A stretch of DNA of 63,652 nt, counting the filler, from Hyphochytrium catenoides (Eukaryota; Protista; Hyphochytriomycota), in assembly GCA_900088475.1 (NCBI GenBank). It is 7 parts of 7 records of this genome, joined end to end, with 100 filler letters (N's around TTAATTAATTAA, not from the genome) between each part and the next. Parts side by side here need not be neighbours in the genome. Positions count along the whole stretch, not along the records: positions 1 to 25,642 come from FLMG01003811.1; 6 more parts are not named here. One strand, 5' to 3'. This document shows positions 481-24,582 of the stretch, piece by piece. The notes under the pieces were generated by a model. The model made no database searches and was not told the DNA's origin. It saw only the letters and a program-made list of their open reading frames with translations. The translations under genes and the position numbers were made by a program. Position 1 is the stretch's first letter, and each line of letters opens with the position of its first letter.

Positions 481-1200
481 GGGTTAGGGTTAAGGTCTGT
501 AGAGTCAGGGAAGATTGTAGTTATTAGGGTTAGGGTTAGGGTTACGCTGCTCTTAACTGCTGCCTTAAACCGTTGCCACAGACCAGACCGCTCCCCTAAA
601 ACTAACCCTAACCCGCTCTCCTTAAACGCTGCCCTTACCCGCTGCCTTAAAGCGCTGTCCTAAAGCGCTGTCCGTCCTTACCCGCTGCGCTAACCCGCTG
701 CCCTAACCCGCTGCCCTAACCCACTGTTCTAAGCCGCTGTCCTAAACCGCTGCCTTTCCTTACCCGCTGCGCTTACCCGCTCCCCTAACCCGCTGCCCTA
801 GCCCCTTGCCCTAGCCCCCTGCCCTAACCCCCTGCCCTAAACCGCTGTCCTAAACCGCTGTCCTAAACCGCTGCCCTTCCTTTATTGCTGCCCTTCCCTA
901 CCCCTCGCTATGCCGGTCACTATGCCGCTGACTATGCCACTCAATAACCGGCTCACTTAACCGTAGCCTATCTCGCTCCCAAGCCTGCTGCCCTTTCTTA
1001 CCCGCTGCTCTTTCTCTTTCGCGGTGTCCTTTTCCTCATCTGCTGCTGCCTTGAACCTCCCATCAACCCACTCACTAACCCTCTTTCGAAACTGGCTCAC
1101 TAAACCATTCCCTATCTCACCCCTTTTCCTCTACCCTGCTGCTCCTTTCCTTTCCCCGCTGTCCTTTCCCGCTGGCTGCTTTTTTCCTAACTAGCTGCCC
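481..1200. repeat. Interstitial telomeric repeats followed by a degenerate 12-13-bp minisatellite containing CCCTAA
   Basis: GGGTTAGGGTTA at 481-492, (TTAGGG)3TTA at 524-544 and CTAACCCTAACCC at 602-614. These are followed by many imperfect copies of CCCTAACCCGCTG / CCTAAACCGCTGT / CCTTACCCGCTG that decay towards ~1200. Confidence 0.8.
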
Positions 1201-8708: not shown

Positions 8709-10662
8709 TGGGGCACTGAGGTGCTGGTTTCACTGTGCTCTGTGCTAAGCTAATTTCCGTGGGATGGAGTGAAAGGANNNNNNNNNNNNNNNNNNNNNNN
8801 NNNNNNNNNNNNNNNNNNNNNNNNNNNNNNNNAGAAAGCACTATTCAGGCTAGCCCACCCTTCAACACGATAATAGCAATGCATCAGCGCGGCGGCACAA
8901 AAGGCAACAAAGGCGAGGAAAGGGAAAGAAGAATACTTTCTGCCAACCCGGACATTAGGGCGCAAGAGATCTCTGAAGATAGAGCAGGTTGAGCAGGCGG
9001 AACGAAATGAGAGACCAAAGGAGAGACTGAAGTCAGCTCAGGTAGGTGGCACCGCAGCAGCAGGCAGAGACAGAGAGGTGAAGAAAGTTCTGTCTTAGTG
9101 CTTAGTAGAAGATAAATGAGGACGGCGATGGTCTTTGACTGGTTCTTGAGGAAAGCAAGCGCTGCTAGAAGGTAACGATGACGACGACGCAACTCTCTAT
9201 TCTGCACCCTCTACTCACTTGCACCAGAAGAAGCTTCAGGGACATCATTTTGGAGGAGTTTATTCTCTTCCGGCACCGTAGTGGAAGAGCTGCTTAGCAA
9301 GCAGACCGCTTGGCCTAGTAATGACACCTAGCTTGGGATCCCGCAGAGAGAGATTCTCCTCCCTCTGTGCGCATCCCTTCTTCCATTTCTCCTGTCTGCC
9401 ACCTCTCTCTCTCTCTCTTCATCTACGTAAAACTACTTGCCCTCACGCCCCATGGCCAGAGCGCTTTGCTACGCCGTCAGCGGCCCAAAGTCCATCAGCC
9501 TCCGTTTGCTGCTATTCCTCCTCCTCGCAGCAGCTCTTCGACGCACAGCCGTGGAGAAATCCGAGAAAGACGATGATCCGTTTGCCGTCCTTCAATGGTA
9601 TAGATCACAGCCGCACGATTAGAAATAGCGACAACGACACAAGAAGCGAGAAGGTACTCATCAATCGTCTGATGCTCGATTTCCTGTTGGACTGATGGTC
9701 TTCCTTCCGTTAAGCAGATGATCTAGATTCTCTAAGGAGTTCATGCCGATGAGAATGTCCCGCTTGTGCGTTGCTAGCTGAGGACGGAGAGAGGAGATGA
9801 TCGTACACTTTCATTTATGTTAGCAGATTACATTGTGGTCCGACACCCGGTGACCATGCCTGGCTGGTGCGCATGATTAAGCGGCCTTAAGTTCATCCAG
9901 AAGTGGTAGGGAGCCTGGTTATAATTATAGAAAGCAGAGAGAAGAAGAAGGCTGAGAGATTCCTGGATAATCCTTTCTATGGAAGCAGACAGAAGAGATC
10001 TTAGTTTTCTTTTGCACCGCGCAGTGTCAGTGGGGTAAAACAACCGCTCTTGACGCAAAAGACGCAGAAAGTATTCTGGAGTGAGATGATGACTGTGAGA
10101 GAGGAGCGAGAAAGGGAATGACAGAGTAGCAAAGGTTGGGGAGGAGGATGGTTCATAAAAGTTCCTACGTTCTAAGCTCGCTACTAGATGAGGAATGAGC
10201 GCAACACATCGCAGGAGATGCTCTGAGGAGAAGAAGGCGCGAAAGCGAGGTTAGTTCAAGGAGTGCCGCGTTCTGGGATAGGCAGACCCCCAGAGAGCCC
10301 TTGTGAGGCTCACTCAGCAGAGAAGGCAGCAAGAGACAGACTATGGAGGGCACTGATGAGCTGTGACGACGTGCCGGACATTCCTACTAAGTCCTAAGCT
10401 CACAGGCTGTGCAGGAGAACGTAGACCACCACTGTCCTTGGTCGTAGCCCAGGATCCTAGCAGCGATTCTTTGACAAAATAGCCCTGAGGGTCTCGACGG
10501 GAGACTTGCCCATGCCTCGTCTCCGTATGTACTCTGAGAAATCTCAACGGTGTCACGAATAATCTGCTATTTTGTCCTTGGTCCTCCTGTGCGTGAAGTG
10601 CTGAGCTGCTGAGCGGTACGACACTGCTACTCTTCATAAGACTGATCCGCTCTCCTCCCTCA

Positions 10663-10900
10663 CTCCTTTTGGTTTATCGCCTATTGCTGATGGAGGCTCT
10701 CTCATAAGCGAAAATACATCCTCCTCTCTCTCTCTCTCTTCTCCCTTTCTCTCTCTCTCTCGCTCTCCTCTCTCTCTCTCTCTCTCTCTCCCTCTCTCCT
10801 TTTGGTTTATCGCCTATTGCTGATGGAGGCTCTCTCATAAACGAAAATACATCCTCCTCTCTCTCTCTCTCTTCTCCCTTTCTCTCTCTCTCTCGCTCTC
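10663..10900. repeat. 133-bp tandem duplication next to a (CT)n tract and an N gap
   Basis: ggtttatcgcctattgctgatggaggctctctcataa(g/a)cgaaaatacatcc... starts at 10671 and again at 10804. It may be an assembly duplication at the gap edge. Confidence 0.8.
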
Positions 10901-10951
10901 CTTCCTCTCTCTCTCTNNNNNNNNNNNNNNNNNNNNNNNNNNNNNNNNNNN

Positions 10952-10987
<36 letters not shown>

Positions 10988-11860
10988 CAGAGATTATTAG
11001 TCGCCCGTGATGATTGACAGCGGCAACGCCAAGAGATAAGACTATGACGGAGGACGCATTTCAGTTAAAAAAATCCTTCCTCATCGACTGGACTAGTGGC
11101 AAATAGGCTTCTTGTCAGCACGCTAGACGCTAATCCTAGCTGCGGAGGGGGTGACCGGCACTGGAGGTCACATTCAATGTTCTGATCCTGTGTCGACCCA
11201 ATGGCCCTGTTGCCTGACTGGACTAGGAAACTTAATTCTCCTTTTCACTGAGTAGCTGGGACGAAGACAGTGGGTGACAAGGGAACTCGCAGCAGGGCGA
11301 GACTGTGACGCTTCTTTGCCTCCTTCTACCTGCTCTATGACTTTCTTATATCACTTATAGAAAGCTCTCCAGCTGCACCAACAATCCTCTGGCTTCTGGC
11401 ATCTGCTTCTCTTCTCATGCTCGCTGTCAAGGTACGGGGGGTTCGCTCTTGTTACAAGGGAGAGAGAGAAGGAAAGGAAGAGATGAGACAGAAGGAGGCA
11501 GAGAGACAGAGGTCGGACAGGAGGCGGAGAAGAGCATATGAGGGAGAGAAGAAGGGAAGGACCCACCACTAGATGCGTCGCAGCCTTCTCTGTGCCTAAT
11601 AACTGATGTGATCATCTAAGGAAGGGAAGATTGGCCATTATACAGAGTTTATCCTAAGTTACATTTTGTTGTCTTCTATCCGCCAGACTCCAGCTCTCAA
11701 CCCATAAGAATATGTGTCAAGCTGCTCCTTATAACAGGTGAAGGGCTTGCTTAGGAGACAGCTCTGATATGGAGGAACTATAAAGCTCTTGCTGGGCCTG
11801 CCAGAGGGCGGCGTGGATGGCCCCACGCTGTCTGGGGGCGGCCCTCCGCTATTGTCTATC

Positions 11861-14800
11861 CTATCCCTCTAATTCATCTTCACCCATGCCCTTGACGGTG
11901 TCATTGAGCAACTCCTGCGCCAACCTCGTCCATTCCGTCATCTCCACACAGGCGGAGACAATTGTTCGGAGCTCCTCCAAACCACGGCGAGCGAGCTCTT
12001 TCCGTCCTGAACGGAGGAAGTCTTTCCACAGGAGCATCCTCGCGATGTCATACCGTGAGCCCATGTCCAGCTCTTGGACATAGATGGGATACTGCTTAAG
12101 CACAATCTCCATGTAGCGATAGATTTCATCTCTGCACGGTGGTGTTACTGNNNNNNNNNNNNNNNNNNNNNNNNNNNNNNAACAGTACCTCAATGACAGC
12201 GTCTCCTCTCCCTTGAGCACCGAGTACTTCCGCATCCTCCATCAATTTCTTGTCTCTTATTATCTTCCGAATCTCTTCCGCTGATGACGGTCCCATCGCA
12301 AAGAGCGCGCCAATAACTCTTGAGTACGCCGTCATCTTGTGAGCGGGCCCTTGATTGTCGAGAGCAGGAGTCAAAGCCTCTAACCGCTCGCGAGCACATC
12401 TTAAACTCTCGGAGTACTTTCCCCAGCGCAAATAAAGCTGCACCTTCAGCCAGTAGCCTGCACCCATCGAAGCTTGTTGGCCCAACAATCGCGCGGTGAT
12501 AGACTCATTCTCTATCAGACACACCTCCGCAGCATCATAATCGCCAAGGTGCATGTGAATCTCGGCTAGCAGGTTGTAGGCCTTGGCAATGGCGAAGTTA
12601 AACTTATTGGGATACATAGCCAGCTGTTCGTGTAGCCCTCTCTGGGCCCAAGACAGCGCTTCTTCGAAGTGGCGTAGACTCTTCAAGTTGACAATGAACC
12701 ACGCGATGACGTTGAAATATAACGAAGAGGAACCGTGATGCTTTGCGCCTTTTTCCTCTTCTAGCTCTGCCATAAGAGGTCGCAAGACTTCCAACGAGCG
12801 CTGTGGTTGATGAAGGTAATGATAACAACATGCAAGGTACATCATACTCATCCTCCGCGCCGTCAGGCTAAATCTCTCGGTGTTGGGCTGTAGATTGTTA
12901 AGAAGGTCCTCCAAAGACGCTAACGCAGTGACTGCATCTCCGATTTGAAGATGGAGCAGTGCCTGTTGGACTCGTATAGGCAAGCGAAAGCTCTTTACTT
13001 CCTCATCACCTAGAGAATGTGGGCGGCCAGCGTAGTCTTCATAGGCAGAGGCGATCTGCAACGCCAAGTGAGGGTTAGAAAGGCACTTGAAGCAGTAGTC
13101 AACAAGGAGATAGGTCAGACTTCCCATTGGGACGTCTCTCTGACGGCACAAGTCAAACAGCTTCCAAGCACCGCTGCAGCCCTTGTTGTTGGCACTACCA
13201 GCTGCTGTTAGCATCGCGATGATGTCTTCTTCGTCTGGTGGGAAAAGTGATTGAAGAGATTTTGGGAGGACAAATGGATCCAGCTGCAGCTGGAGAGACC
13301 AAGCCAGTAGCAGTGCATCAATCTTGGTTGAGTCTCCTTGTCGCTCATGAAAGGATTGTAAAACTTGTTTGCAGAACTGCGAGCTCGCCACACAATCAAA
13401 CCACAATGTGGCCTCCTCGCCGCTTGAGAAGTGATGGACTTCCAGTCTTGGGACCTCTCCTTCGCGAAGGAGATCACGCCGGATGCCCTGCACAATCTTC
13501 TCATGTATCTTGGACGGATGTATACCATACTTCATAGGAAGCAACGGCCGTAGCGTACGCTGGGTGATCTGATGGATGTAGACAACCTCGCCGCGCTCAG
13601 GAACAGACCTGTCTACCACAAGAAGGCCCGCCAGCTCCAGCGAACGAAGGAGTGTGCTCAAGTGATCCCTAGCGTCGAAGACATTCTTCTGTTCTTTCTG
13701 CTTTCTTTCCTCTAATGCCTTTTGCGACTCGAATTCCTCTTTGACAAGTTCGTGAAGCAGACGGGTAGGAATGCCGTTGGGAGAGAAGATACTCAGCGCA
13801 TACAGGAGCGAGAGCTGCGTTGGATCCATTCGATACGCGTTAAGCAGCTGCTGAATGGTTGTCGTGAGGCCGCGGTGCTCTCCTGAGAAGAACTGCTTCT
13901 CCCCAACCATTTCTATGGCCTCTGAGTCTGACGCAAAGTGCTCCGCTACCTGTTCAATGGGCACCTCCTTTACCAGCAGATGCCCAAGCAGCGCCACGCC
14001 GAGAGGGCTGTTCCCCAGGTATGTCATCAGTAGTTGATTGACAAGTTCAGACTTTGAGACAATGCTAGACCACACCCTCAGTCGTGTTTGGCGTGAAGCA
14101 GAAGTGGGCTTGTTAGGGAGGCTTGAACCCATAATAATGCACCGCAGCAAGTTCATCGACTCAGCAGGATCCAGAGGCATAACGGTAAGACTCTCAGCAG
14201 CAGGGACAGCGGCGATGTCTAAGGTGCAACAGGTGGTGATCAGGGCAAACCCGTCTGAGCCAAGGCCGGCAAGGAGCTCAACTACGACTGGCATTGTCGA
14301 GGGAGTGACGTCATCAAACACTAAGAAGCATGACAGCTGCTCAAAGAGAACAAGTGCTTCTGTCACCAGCTCGTGCAGTTTTGCATTGTCTGCCACTGTT
14401 CGACCGCCGATCGTAGTAATGAGAGACGCGAGACTGGACCTCAGCAGCTCCAAAGACGGCGCTGTCATCCAAAAGTGCATCTCGAAGGGACTCCAAACTT
14501 CCAGATCTGCGGAGAACTTCCTCGCAAGAAGACTCTTGCCCATGCCCGGCGGTCCCGTTAACACAATGACCCGCTTCTCAGCATTACCAAGACCCGCGAG
14601 AACACCCTGCGTAATGTCATGCATCAATCCCTCCCGCCCGACGAATCCCTTCGGAGGCGGCTTCTTCATAAAGCGAAGTTTACGCTGTCTTCTCACTTCT
14701 CTTTGCTGCTGCATCCCCTCCTCCTCATTTTCCGTTATCTCCCTCCTCGTGCAGATGGTGATGACCTCTCGATAGAGCAGTGTCTTCAACATGAAGAGTC

Positions 14801-16115
14801 TCTGGATCTCGCAGTCAAAGTCTCCGTTGGCGTTGAAGAGCTGAAGGATGGCAACGGTTGACATTATCCACTGAAGGAGGACATCTTGAGGCACCTCGTC
14901 TCCGAAACTTCTGTGGTTGAAGGCTGTTCGTGCCATGCTTAACACGTCCACATGCGAGTACCGCTTTGTGGTCTTGGTTGTCATCGTGGGCACGTCGATA
15001 CTCTTCAGCAAAAGCGGCTTGGGGTGAACGCCAAGCACACGTTCTATAACCGGATGATGCATTTCTCTTCGTAAGAACTTGCACAAAGTGGAGACGCAGG
15101 CAACCGTTTTGGCAGATTCTGCCCCAGCATCAGACAGCGCCTGGCTGTGCTCCACAAAGAGACTTACCACCGTATCCTCCGCTATATGCAGCAACTCCAT
15201 GGTTGCGAAGAGCTTCCCAGCTTCCGACCCAAGCTGCAACTTATAGAACGACTGCACTGTTGACTGAGGAACCGGAGAGAACCTCCCACAAAACTTATGA
15301 TCAGGATACTGAGCCATACGAAGTAGCCTGACCACCGACTCTGTGGCAAGCTTGCATTCTATGGCGGTGACAGATAGCATGTTATGCGCGATGAGGTTTC
15401 TAAAGTGGATGATGTGCTCTGCATGCTGAGACACCAGCAGAAGAACGTTAGTCATAGCATCATAAGAAGCTATATCATCATCGCAATATCCACCATCTCT
15501 CGCTATTTCACCTCCAAACATGGTCACCAGCACCTCTGCCCTCTGTTGACTAAGGTCCATGAGCATCAGGCAAATCCGGTACGTGTCGACTACCAAGCGG
15601 ATAAGTGGTGCCCGCGCCCCAGAGACGCCAGAGTCATCATTCTTCTGTGTCTCCGCGGTCAAGCTCTCATCGGCTGCCACGCTATTGCCGACGATTCCTT
15701 CTTTGTCAATAGACTGAGGAAGAAGGAGGGAGGAGAAGAATGGCTCAAAGTGCTGTTTGGCGAAGAGCATGAAGTGGTACAAAGCTAGGAAGTCGGCAGA
15801 GACGAAGATAGCTTCTTCTTCTGGTAACTCTCCAGCTACAGCGCTTGTTGCCGCTGATAAAGAGTCCACTACGGCGAGCTCTCCTTCCTGGTGGGGTGTC
15901 ATCGCCGCGGTCTCTCGGCCGCTGCAGCTGCTTCTCGGCTTACTAGCCTCCGGAATAGTCTCTAAAAGCTTCATATCACGCTTTAAGGGCCGGGACAACG
16001 TATGTCGCAACTCCTCTTTATGACCGCTGTTCTCTACAATGGTGATGGACTGTTCCTGATAGAACTCATGCTTGAACTGGCGGCGAGCATCGGATGGTAT
16101 ATATATTGAGCATTG
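11861..16115 (-). CDS. NLR-like STAND NTPase: tandem Swt1-like HEPN domains + NB-ARC + winged helix + TPR array (~1400 aa)
   Basis: 1294-aa ORF at 12126-16010; the frame is open to 16115 and the true start is uncertain. NB-ARC motifs: FVGRE, Walker A GPPGMGKS (14532-14555), Walker B FLVFDDV, RNBS-B LITT, GLPL-like LGNSPLGVALLG, WHD LLYALSIFSPNGIP and MHD-like YIHQITQ. The C-terminus has TPR-like repeats (e.g. AKAYNLLAEIHMHLGDYDAAEVCL). R-X4-H motifs are RNLIAH (15384-15401) and RTAFNH (14913-14930). The CDS most likely continues across the N gap (12151-12180) into the 11861-12150 frame. Confidence 0.9.
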
Positions 16116-16494
16116 TCATTGATCGGAGTGGCGCTGAGGTCTATCCATTGAAGAAGGGACCGATCATGCGGCAGGTGCAGGTTCGAGGAACCCTACTACC
16201 TAGCTATCAAGCGCATCAGCAACTGTCATCCCTGCCTGTCTCGCTCACAAAAATGTCGCTCCTCTCGTTGCTCCAGTCCCAGAACAGCCTGTCTTCTTGT
16301 GCGTCCAAACGGGAGAGCAAGCCGGCTGGTCTCCGCGGTGTACTGAGCGGCGGAGAGCCGGGCCAATTGAAAGTGGTGATGTCTCATCAAAATGTTCCCT
16401 TCCTCTACAGTACATACACCGGGATTACTTATACGGCACATCAAGAGCCCTGAAGAGCTCTTGATGAGAACGAAGGGAGAGACATGAGAAAGAG

Positions 16495-16594
16495 TCAAAT
16501 AAAAGAGGGAGAGGGGAGAAGAGAGAGAGACAGAGAGAGAAGAGAGAGAGAGAGTGAGAGACAGAGACAGAGAGAGAAGAGAGAGAGAGAGAGT

Positions 16595-16640
<46 letters not shown>

Positions 16641-16655
16641 GAGAGAGAGGGAGAC
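16495..16655. repeat. (GA)n microsatellite upstream of the NLR-like gene
   Basis: Long, imperfect GAGAGA tract visible directly in the sequence. Confidence 0.95.
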
Positions 16656-16859
16656 TGTAAGAATTGATGTCTGTTTCTAATGAATGAAGGTAGGAAATAA
16701 TGGACTGGACAGTTATGAGAAACCATGCGGGTACTTGTACTTGTACGTGTTGTAATAATGTGCGATCTACGCCAAGCGACTGATGGCTAATGATTGGCAG
16801 GATACTATTCATCATGTGAACACTGGCCTTTCTTGATAGTCTCTGAGTTATTCTTTTGT

Positions 16860-23045: not shown

Positions 23046-24582
23046 TTATGAGAGGTGCGGGCTCATAGATGCGGATTCTGCAGTCGTAATCCCTATTCTA
23101 GGGGATAGTGTGGACGAGGTGGTGCCACCTCGCGAGGCATTGCTGGCAAAGCTCGCAGCTATCGACTGACCAGCAGGAGCCGCTGGGATACCCGACGCGT
23201 GGCGCAACATACCTGTTGCTGGCTTGACATCGGGTTTAACGAGAGAGCTGTTCTCGGTTTCCCCACTACCTCTGACGTCCTGCACCATCTGCCTTAGATG
23301 TCTGATCTCTATGTCCTTATCAGCCCAATCCGCCAACAGTGTGTTGACTTGCTGCTGCAGACGTCTCTGCGTCGACTTGATCGACGCTTCTCTGCTGTGG
23401 ATGTCAGTCAAGGCAGCATCCAAACGGTGAACCACATCCTGAAGGGCGTTCTCCACATCACACTGACTTTGCCTGACAGGTTCGAGCACGGCTTCAAAAG
23501 CGTCGACAGATATTGAACGAGCCCGCGGCAGAGTTTCTGGCCCATTCGCCTCAGACTGTGTCCGTGAGAGCTCCTCGACCATCGCTGACTGCCGCGCCGT
23601 CACAGATACAAGGCTGGCAACCTGCTCTTCGAGTTGCGCGAGGCGTCGATGGAGTTCCTGGTTCTGCTGCTTTAACTCTCCGTTTTGGTGCTCCTACAGA
23701 GCAGACTTCGTTAAGCCAATTCTCTATGTTTCGGCGGAAATGCTACTTAAACGTAAGACTTACCAGCGCTAAGATGCGGTCTTCTGAAATTGCCCCTGAG
23801 AGTGAGCCTGGGGTCAGGGATAATGGTCTAGCCTCTGTACAAGGTCTGCCTCTCACTGTCTGTTCACCCAGAGGAAGTGCAAACGTTTTCTCTTGGTCGG
23901 CGGATTGTCGACTGTACTTGCTAGCCTGCACTAATGCCGCTTGAACTTGTTTGTTGCCGGGCACCTCACGCCTGGATCCCGTAGTGTGAGGTCGTATAGG
24001 AGAGGAAACGAGATGGCCCTCGCTATGCTTGGGTGAGGAGCTATCGCTATAAGAAGGGCTTCGGGTCGGGGAACAGGGAAGACGCCCTGCCCCATCTACC
24101 GTTCCTAACGCTCCTCCTGTGGCGCTGAAGGTGGAAATGAACTGCTGCAGCTTCGATTTTGGCGCATTAGACTCAGCTTCCTCACGTGATGGAGACTCCG
24201 GTTTTGGTTCCTCCATTGGTTCGCTTTTGGATTTTAGCGTGCCGTTGTCTGTGTGGCACTTAAGCTCCCAAAGACAGCGGATCACCTTTTCTCTGTCCCC
24301 ACTCTCTTGCAAATCTGCTGGGCAGAAAATTTGACCCTCGACGGCTTGCGTTTCCCGGAGCCATTTCAGAAAGCTGTTCACATTAGCGATACAGTTATAT
24401 GCTGTTGTTGATCGATGGATCCGCCCGATGGCGGCAGGTTGAATGCTATTAGCTAGCGCACAGAGGCTCTGTCCGTTCTTAAGAGCCGGCATGAGGGGGC
24501 CCTCAATGCCTTTGAAGATTCTACCCTCAATCCAGCCCTTAAGCTCTGCCTCCATCGAGTCCAACGCAGCAGGGTCGGCCAT
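23046..24582 (-). CDS. Calponin-homology (calponin/transgelin/IQGAP-type CH) domain protein with C-terminal coiled coil, two exons
   Basis: CH domain ELKGWIE...LKNGQSLCALANSIQP...NVNSFLKWL...FCPADLQE...KVIRCLWEL. A GTAAGT donor at ~23763 and an acceptor at ~23694 join it to a coiled-coil exon ending at 23046. Confidence 0.85.

Follow-up and report, generated by a model that had tools for sequence, protein, structure and literature searches.

NLR-type receptors with an enzymatic effector have been examined in depth in plants, animals, fungi and bacteria, and hardly in protists. HEPN-NLRs have been described in nine invertebrate taxa (PMC8662601), and HEPN domains of the CXorf38 family are fused to NACHT in cnidarians and cephalochordates (PMC3710099). 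In bacteria, HEPN domains are found N-terminal to STAND NTPases (PMC3710099; 10.1101/2022.07.19.500537). The single chain of Swt1 carries two HEPN domains as a dyad (PMC3710099). HEPN ribonucleases (RNases) build one site from two motifs of the form R-x4-6-H, which have a polar residue after the arginine and close helix 3, ahead of the loop that leads to helix 4 (PMC3710099). Here we describe a gene in a stretch of 63,652 nucleotides from the protist Hyphochytrium catenoides (assembly GCA_900088475.1), which was joined from seven parts and is called the window below. The gene lies in the first part (FLMG01003811.1, positions 1 to 25,642), and a reading made from the DNA alone (the sequence-only reading) had proposed that it encodes an NLR-like immune receptor with a tandem HEPN ribonuclease effector.

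Our analysis points to an intact single-exon gene for an NB-ARC STAND NTPase of ~1,430 amino acids with a TPR-like region as the putative sensor and an N-terminal helical module of ~360 amino acids as the candidate effector. This module would consist of a Swt1/Abi2-type HEPN domain with the motif R-N-x-x-A-H (unit 1), followed by a much more divergent HEPN-like four-helix unit which keeps R-x4-H (unit 2). We give the reading of this protein as a STAND switch with a HEPN-type RNase head a probability of about one half. Residues are numbered throughout as in the sequence-only reading, counted from the TTG at 16010. The frame and the two units lie as follows.

11861..16115, minus strand: whole open frame of the gene as first delimited, including an assembly gap; stop codon at 11861-11863
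15291..15815, minus strand: unit 1 (residues 66-240), candidate Swt1-like HEPN unit; helix 1 with E89-P90-F, helix 2 with D142, helix 3 ending in RNxxAH, then helix 4
14739..15263, minus strand: unit 2 (residues 250-424), second four-helix unit with linker helix; HEPN-like by predicted structure only

Results

Unit 1 and the Swt1-like HEPN domains

Using a reference of 36 genuine PF18731 domains, gathered from ~800 bacterial genomes, we found that a three-paralog profile of unit 1 matches this family in hhalign with a probability of 60% and a P value of 8.6e-5. The match spans helix 3, the motif and helix 4 of unit 1. The best P value among the controls (reversed, NB-ARC alignment and 40 column shuffles) was 0.026. 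Against a reference of 23 Abi_2 sequences unit 1 reached a P value of 0.003; the Swt1 reference against the Abi_2 reference, which served as positive control, gave 1e-8. In three of the PF18731 reference members, Pfam showed the HEPN_Swt1 domain fused to DUF499 or SNF2.

The MAFFT alignment placed 27 reference domains over the entire unit 1. In helix 1, EPF is matched with RPF/SPF, and in helix 2, D142 with the conserved aspartate; RNxxAH stands over RNxWAH, and the fourth helices coincide. R204 and H209 are found without exception in the 30 rows. The Swt1-like features that the sequence-only reading had listed for unit 1, namely xxPF, the aspartate of helix 2 and RN..AH, are thus borne out by the alignment with the 27 references. 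The identity of unit 1 to bacterial Swt1-like HEPN proteins is only ~10-15%.

The motif region of one paralog matched the HEPN end of Csx1 weakly (E 0.0065), and a sequence search of the PDB with unit 1 and its references returned Csm6 at E 0.016, a value largely due to the references. When a protein language model was queried with the whole module, with unit 1 or with unit 2, the neighbours were HEPN_Swt1 or HEPN_DZIP3 clusters each time, with scores of 0.85-0.89, under the 0.9 line of the tool. A match of the N-terminal profile to ORC2 among the PDB sequences was dismissed as chance. Overall, unit 1 is likely a HEPN domain of the Swt1/Abi2 type, and its homology to HEPN is moderately supported.

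Unit 2 and the helix-3 rule

In unit 1, R204-N-x-x-A-H209 ends the predicted helix 177-210 and helix 216-234 comes next. In unit 2, the R-x4-6-H motif stands at the end of helix 3, where the predicted helix 353-365 is followed by a loop and by helix 375-394. Both motifs therefore close a predicted helix before a loop and another helix, as the helix-3/helix-4 rule has it. A search of unit 2 against the PDB by sequence returned nothing. We slightly favour the view that unit 2 is a second, highly divergent HEPN-like unit.

A three-gene family with invariant motifs

The genome comprises 61 Mb in 4,759 contigs, and three NB-ARC loci exceed the Pfam cut-off: the gene described here and two paralogs, C637 and C2747, each on another contig of 48 kb. 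When the genome was searched with a profile of the N-terminal domain, the same three loci were returned and no others; head and NB-ARC are coupled one to one in this genome. The N-termini of the three paralogs share 26% identity and 36 invariant columns, among them three motifs.

15384..15401, minus strand: R204-N-L-I-A-H209, canonical HEPN R-N-x-x-A-H; invariant in the three paralogs, aligned on the motif in 27 of 27 reference HEPN_Swt1 domains
15054..15071, minus strand: R314-R-E-M-H-H319, a third invariant motif, R-x-E-x-x-H; end of predicted helix 2 of unit 2
14913..14930, minus strand: R361-T-A-F-N-H366, invariant R-x4-H; end of predicted helix 3 of unit 2

All three invariant histidines stand exactly 5 residues past one of the four invariant arginines, for which the chance is ~3e-7. 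Moreover, the 455 amino acids contain four R-x4-H motifs, where composition lets ~1 be expected. R204/H209 and R361/H366 were located where the sequence-only reading had put them, and the check for paralogs that it had called for yielded two, with both motifs invariant in all three proteins. Its inventory had overlooked R314-x-E-x-x-H319, which is equally invariant and sits at the far end of predicted helix 2 of unit 2.

The C637 paralog (L005:2820-8769, minus strand) has an NB-ARC frame that stops after 973 amino acids. Two further open reading frames (ORFs) of 380 and 399 amino acids follow on the same strand, the second with clear TPRs (TPR_12, 42.4 bits). Probably the gene contains introns, or the assembly frameshifts. 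Two more long STAND-type genes of the genome, with frames of 1,717 and 1,775 amino acids, match NACHT rather than NB-ARC.

G000:C547:6657-7229, minus strand: NACHT-type STAND locus
G000:C51:54642-54968, plus strand: NACHT-type STAND locus

The N-terminal HEPN-like profile, run over the genome, found no match at these two loci, and for this reason they probably carry other effector heads.

Predicted structure

A HEPN domain is expected to be an up-down bundle of four helices with an insert between the second and the third and an acidic residue in the second. AlphaFold with the three paralogs only gave a mean predicted local distance difference test score (pLDDT) of 37, which is unusable. When the PF18731 references were added, aligned on unit 1 only, the mean rose to 65, with the core helices of unit 1 at 74-93. 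Unit 2, whose alignment consisted of the three paralogs alone, rose from ~40 to 57-81 in this reference-aided model. In both models, R204..H209 and R361..H366 end a helix and are followed by a loop and a helix.

An exhaustive VIA search of 48,161 chains returned the C-terminal domain of yeast Swt1 (4pqz) as top match, on unit 2, with a Z score of 7.7 and a root-mean-square deviation of 3.7 Å over 126 of 136 residues. Among the 50 VIA matches listed, at least 12 are HEPN structures aligned on unit 2, including 1wwp, 1ylm, 2hsb, 1jog, two Csm6, Roquin, sacsin, AbiF, AbiA and a HEPN toxin. For unit 2 it is this enrichment of HEPN folds, not the score, that is suggestive. Re-ranking of the Foldseek list by VIA was dominated by TRP-channel helices and uninformative. 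A shape search of the Atlas with unit 1 returned one unnamed cluster of 182 amino acids only.

The NB-ARC switch and the C-terminal region

The central part of the protein carries the NB-ARC domain and the motifs of STAND NTPases.

13965..14585, minus strand: NB-ARC domain, residues 476-682; Pfam 25.5 bits, cut-off 23.5
14532..14555, minus strand: Walker A / P-loop GPPGMGKS, residues 486-493
14307..14318, minus strand: Walker B FDDV, residues 565-568
13995..14015, minus strand: GxP/GLPL-type motif GNSPLGV, residues 666-672
12372..12590, minus strand: best TPR-like stretch, residues 1141-1213; TPR_12 22.6 bits, cut-off 30.1

Together with an MHD-like YIHQ at residues 811-814, the Walker A, Walker B and GxP motifs are all conserved. 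The domain lies above the Pfam gathering score with Walker A, Walker B and GxP in place, so the protein belongs to the NB-ARC/STAND class with the complete set of motifs that had been read from the DNA. A profile of the NB-ARC region matched the plant NLRs ZAR1 and NRC1 in the PDB (E 7e-8 to 2e-7). The NCBIfam model NF040586 of bacterial NB-ARC-TPR proteins gave E 1.4e-21, yet far under the cut-off of the model itself; by sequence, the NB-ARC part resembles these bacterial proteins. Among the PADLOC defence models, which include Avs and other prokaryotic STANDs, nothing went past a P-loop-level match to mad8 (E 0.003).

The TPR-like stretch sits within a probably helical C-terminal region of ~600 amino acids. 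The C-terminal TPRs of the sequence-only reading stand as TPR-like matches. In this copy none of the TPR Pfam models exceeds its gathering score, while both paralogs pass the cut-offs, with TPR_12 at 42.4 bits for the C637 locus and TPR_2 at 29.1 bits; the TPR_12 match of C637 lies in the separate ORF downstream of its NB-ARC frame. We looked for similarity of the tail beyond the assembly gap to the C-termini of the paralogs, and none was detectable. The layout of effector, STAND NTPase and TPR-like region in a eukaryotic protein is real.

Reading frame, assembly gap and surroundings of the gene

The ends of the coding region and the gap are placed as follows.

15972..15974, minus strand: likely start codon, the first in-frame ATG (M13)
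15900-15902, minus strand: alternative start M37, the next ATG
12151..12180: assembly gap, written as 30 N; 206 letters in a public contig keep the gene in frame
11861..12150, minus strand: C-terminal tail beyond the gap, 95 codons and stop

With the 30 N taken literally, no stop interrupts the minus-strand frame from 16115 until one at 12126. Beyond the gap only one frame is open, which differs from the upstream one and runs for 95 codons to the stop at 11861-11863. A contig of run X2 aligns to 12001-12150 and to 12181-12467 and has 206 letters in between, against the 30 N. The 2 bases left before the gap and these 206 letters make 69 codons and 1 base, and the next full codon starts at 12148. 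This is exactly the sole open frame of the tail, so the 95 codons are in frame and the minus-strand frame delimited from the DNA probably stays open from end to end. At the edges of the gap, the 30 letters visible at each side of the 206 are open in the tail frame; read on this basis, the product comprises ~1,430 amino acids from M13.

Two samples, with three DNA runs between them, contain the locus. The listed variants that separate runs and haplotypes are 14 synonymous and 18 non-synonymous changes, no stops and one indel of 3 nt, a pattern that fits a functional gene under moderate constraint. An ORF on the same contig (window 23746-24636, minus strand) matches the calponin-homology (CH) domain with E 1.2e-11, and because of this CH-domain gene we regard the contig as eukaryotic.

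Within a single run, two haplotype contigs, each at about half depth, cover window 11773-12030, 12779-12866 and 13600-13629. They differ by up to ~5% (14 differences in 258 nt), and the sample is therefore heterozygous or mixed. An ORF of 245 amino acids lies antisense to the NB-ARC region (window 14038-14775, plus strand) and is most likely no gene but a shadow cast by the long coding frame. Next to the CH-domain ORF, the ORF at 23049-23603 gave weak coiled-coil-type matches only. Long AG/CT dinucleotide microsatellites lie on either side of the gene (window 16504-16654, 10724-10798 and 10650-10916), one of them ~400 nt upstream of the start of the frame, and they account for the spurious 'SLSLSL' ORFs at 16226-16815. 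Window 10650-10916 holds a 133-nt unit in duplicate, adjoining another assembly gap (10917-10951). At window 606-881 there is a degenerate array of the 13-nt unit CCCTAACCCGCTG in ~20 copies, with further periodicities at 69 and 82 nt; the array is internal to the contig and includes telomere-like blocks of CCCTAA(A).

Discussion

Starting from the observed architecture, motif conservation and family structure, we propose that a ligand would be bound by the TPR-like region, which would release the NTP-dependent oligomerisation of NB-ARC. Oligomerisation would bring the HEPN modules together and complete a metal-independent RNase site, and the RNA of the cell or of an invader might then be cut, leading to growth arrest or death. 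Unit 1 would be the main catalytic unit, with unit 2 as partner half-site or scaffold. The partner half-site could come from unit 2 of the same chain, or from the head of a neighbouring protomer after NB-ARC oligomerisation. Ligand, oligomerisation, RNase activity and biological outcome are here suggested by analogy.

Several results weigh against the reading of the head as a HEPN-type RNase. No Pfam HEPN family matched the whole head, each unit or the three paralogs even at E 10, in the comparison that the sequence-only reading had suggested, and the Pfam models HEPN_Swt1 and HEPN_DZIP3 found none over the entire genome. When the six motif residues were masked, the P value of unit 1 fell to 0.16, with the register of the best alignment unchanged; because of this drop, the profile signal comes mostly from the motif, as is usual for HEPN. 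For unit 2, the residue after R361 is T or A across the paralogs, not polar N, D or H. In hhalign, unit 2 gave a P value of 0.1 with PF18731, with R361/H366 placed on the motif and no profile signal, and of 0.36 with the Abi_2 reference. The two helical units had been called similar from the DNA. The alignment does keep the order of their helices, pairing the first helices with each other and likewise the second, but the similarity is not significant when tested as an internal duplication (P 0.14).

The searches for relatives and folds point the same way. With phmmer, the N-terminal 419 amino acids had no match in 1.84 billion representative proteins. Searches by word index returned none either, whether the query was the N-terminus, the NB-ARC/TPR part or, at E 10, the unit 1 profile, and pattern and tblastn scans of bacterial and archaeal genomes and metagenome contigs found no relatives. 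We likewise found no record of the exact product of a paralog. Foldseek against the PDB gave nothing below E 0.1. In VIA, unit 1 matched the HEPN structure 1ufb at a Z score of 5.0, with generic four-helix bundles matching equally well, and all Z scores were <8, a range that the tool flags as common for helical bundles. The unit 1 half of the reference-aided model, with HEPN references in its alignment, is not independent evidence. For the locus no RNA run is on record.

One alternative is that units 1 and 2 pack in one chain, with R204/H209 and R361/H366 as a self-contained Cas13-like site under STAND/TPR control. Both motifs are invariant and both stand at the end of a HEPN helix 3, the rise in pLDDT of unit 2 once unit 1 was anchored suggests that the units were modelled in contact, and Swt1 has a HEPN dyad, too (PMC3710099). 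However, unit 2 lacks both the polar residue after the arginine and a HEPN signal at the level of sequence, the dyad of Swt1 is considered to be inactive (PMC3710099), and the prediction of a complex of unit 1 with unit 2 gave no answer (ipSAE 0.00), which counts neither for nor against the pairing. We hold such a site to be unlikely, and the same low odds apply to a wider version, in which a private NLR family of three genes, either evolved here or taken up and since changed beyond recognition, has a self-contained tandem HEPN RNase with a Cas13-like site, and R314-x-E-x-x-H319 forms an additional or regulatory site that no described HEPN family shows. It is improbable, too, that the head is derived from HEPN and no RNase at all, serving in RNA binding or as an oligomerisation or adaptor module that signals onward, like the inactive Swt1 or sacsin-type HEPN domains. 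The nearest structural match, the C-terminal domain of Swt1, is considered catalytically inactive (PMC3710099) and Pfam-level matches to active HEPN families are missing, but the canonical R, N, A and H and two more R-x4-H motifs are invariant at 26% paralog identity, whereas inactive HEPN domains typically lose the motif (PMC3710099).

The missing Pfam and Foldseek matches, the Z scores below 8 and an hhalign signal that lies mostly in a six-residue motif would also suit an unrelated orphan helical bundle, in which R-x4-H serves, for example, metal or nucleotide binding and the likeness to HEPN is convergent or due to chance. We think this quite improbable: unit 1 aligns with PF18731 at four separate landmarks, no control came near the observed P value, HEPN folds are enriched among the structural neighbours of unit 2, whose alignment contains no HEPN sequence, and three independent language-model queries led to the same clan. 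An artefact of the assembly, a contaminant or a dead gene might be suspected from the gap inside the gene, the missing RNA evidence and the lack of a homolog in public protein sets. This can be given very little weight, since an independent contig bridges the gap in frame, three DNA runs from two samples cover the locus, two paralogs lie on other 48 kb contigs, a eukaryotic CH-domain gene shares the contig, and there are no stop codons among the allelic variants.

If the reading as a STAND switch with a HEPN-type RNase head is true, the gene would offer a compact system, open to testing, in which a unicellular eukaryote uses RNA degradation as the output of an immune or cell-death response, and in which every NB-ARC switch of the genome appears paired with the same HEPN-like head. 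Moreover, the head is a test case for finding fast-evolving effector domains, because it is invisible to Pfam and without a detectable relative among 1.8 billion representative proteins.

Comparison with known systems

The best sequence relatives of unit 1 are bacterial proteins in which a Swt1-like HEPN domain is combined with a DUF499 AAA+ ATPase or an SNF2 helicase (Ava_2192 type; PF18731). Like the probable HEPN domain of unit 1, theirs lies N-terminal to a P-loop NTPase; in contrast, it is a single HEPN with a different ATPase class and no TPR. The C-terminal HEPN dyad of yeast Swt1 (4pqz), the top structural match of unit 2, has two HEPN domains in one chain. In Swt1, however, a PIN nuclease precedes the dyad, from which the catalytic motif has been lost, whereas the present protein combines invariant motifs with a STAND switch as partner.

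Cas13 has two HEPN domains in one chain, which form one site. As in Cas13, two motif-bearing HEPN-like units may share one polypeptide in the present protein, but no sequence or structural match to Cas13 was found here, nor a guide-RNA apparatus. Bacterial HEPN-STAND proteins, bNACHT proteins with HEPN and Avs-type receptors have the same order of effector, STAND NTPase and repeat sensor. Unlike these, the gene described here is eukaryotic, matches no PADLOC model and has no relative in the bacterial genome scans. The invertebrate HEPN-NACHT NLRs place an N-terminal HEPN effector on a STAND NTPase, as is proposed here, with an inferred role in RNA-directed defence or cell death. Their NTPase is NACHT, their single HEPN belongs to a different family, and their repeats are of other types, whereas the present protein has NB-ARC, a TPR-like C-terminus and probably two units, in a unicellular eukaryotic host.

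A full-text search of the literature that combined HEPN, NLR and protist found no paper. The novelty claimed in the sequence-only reading was nevertheless overstated, since earlier work had described HEPN-NACHT NLRs, the HEPN-STAND proteins of bacteria and the dyad of Swt1 (PMC8662601, PMC3710099, 10.1101/2022.07.19.500537). What is new is the combination of NB-ARC, a TPR-like sensor and a motif-bearing, probably tandem HEPN head; the occurrence of such a design in a unicellular eukaryote, where each NB-ARC gene of the genome has this head in strict one-to-one coupling; and a head that has diverged past the curated models and 1.8 billion proteins. If confirmed, this gene would add an NB-ARC-TPR example with a probably tandem HEPN to the HEPN-NLRs of invertebrates and bacteria.

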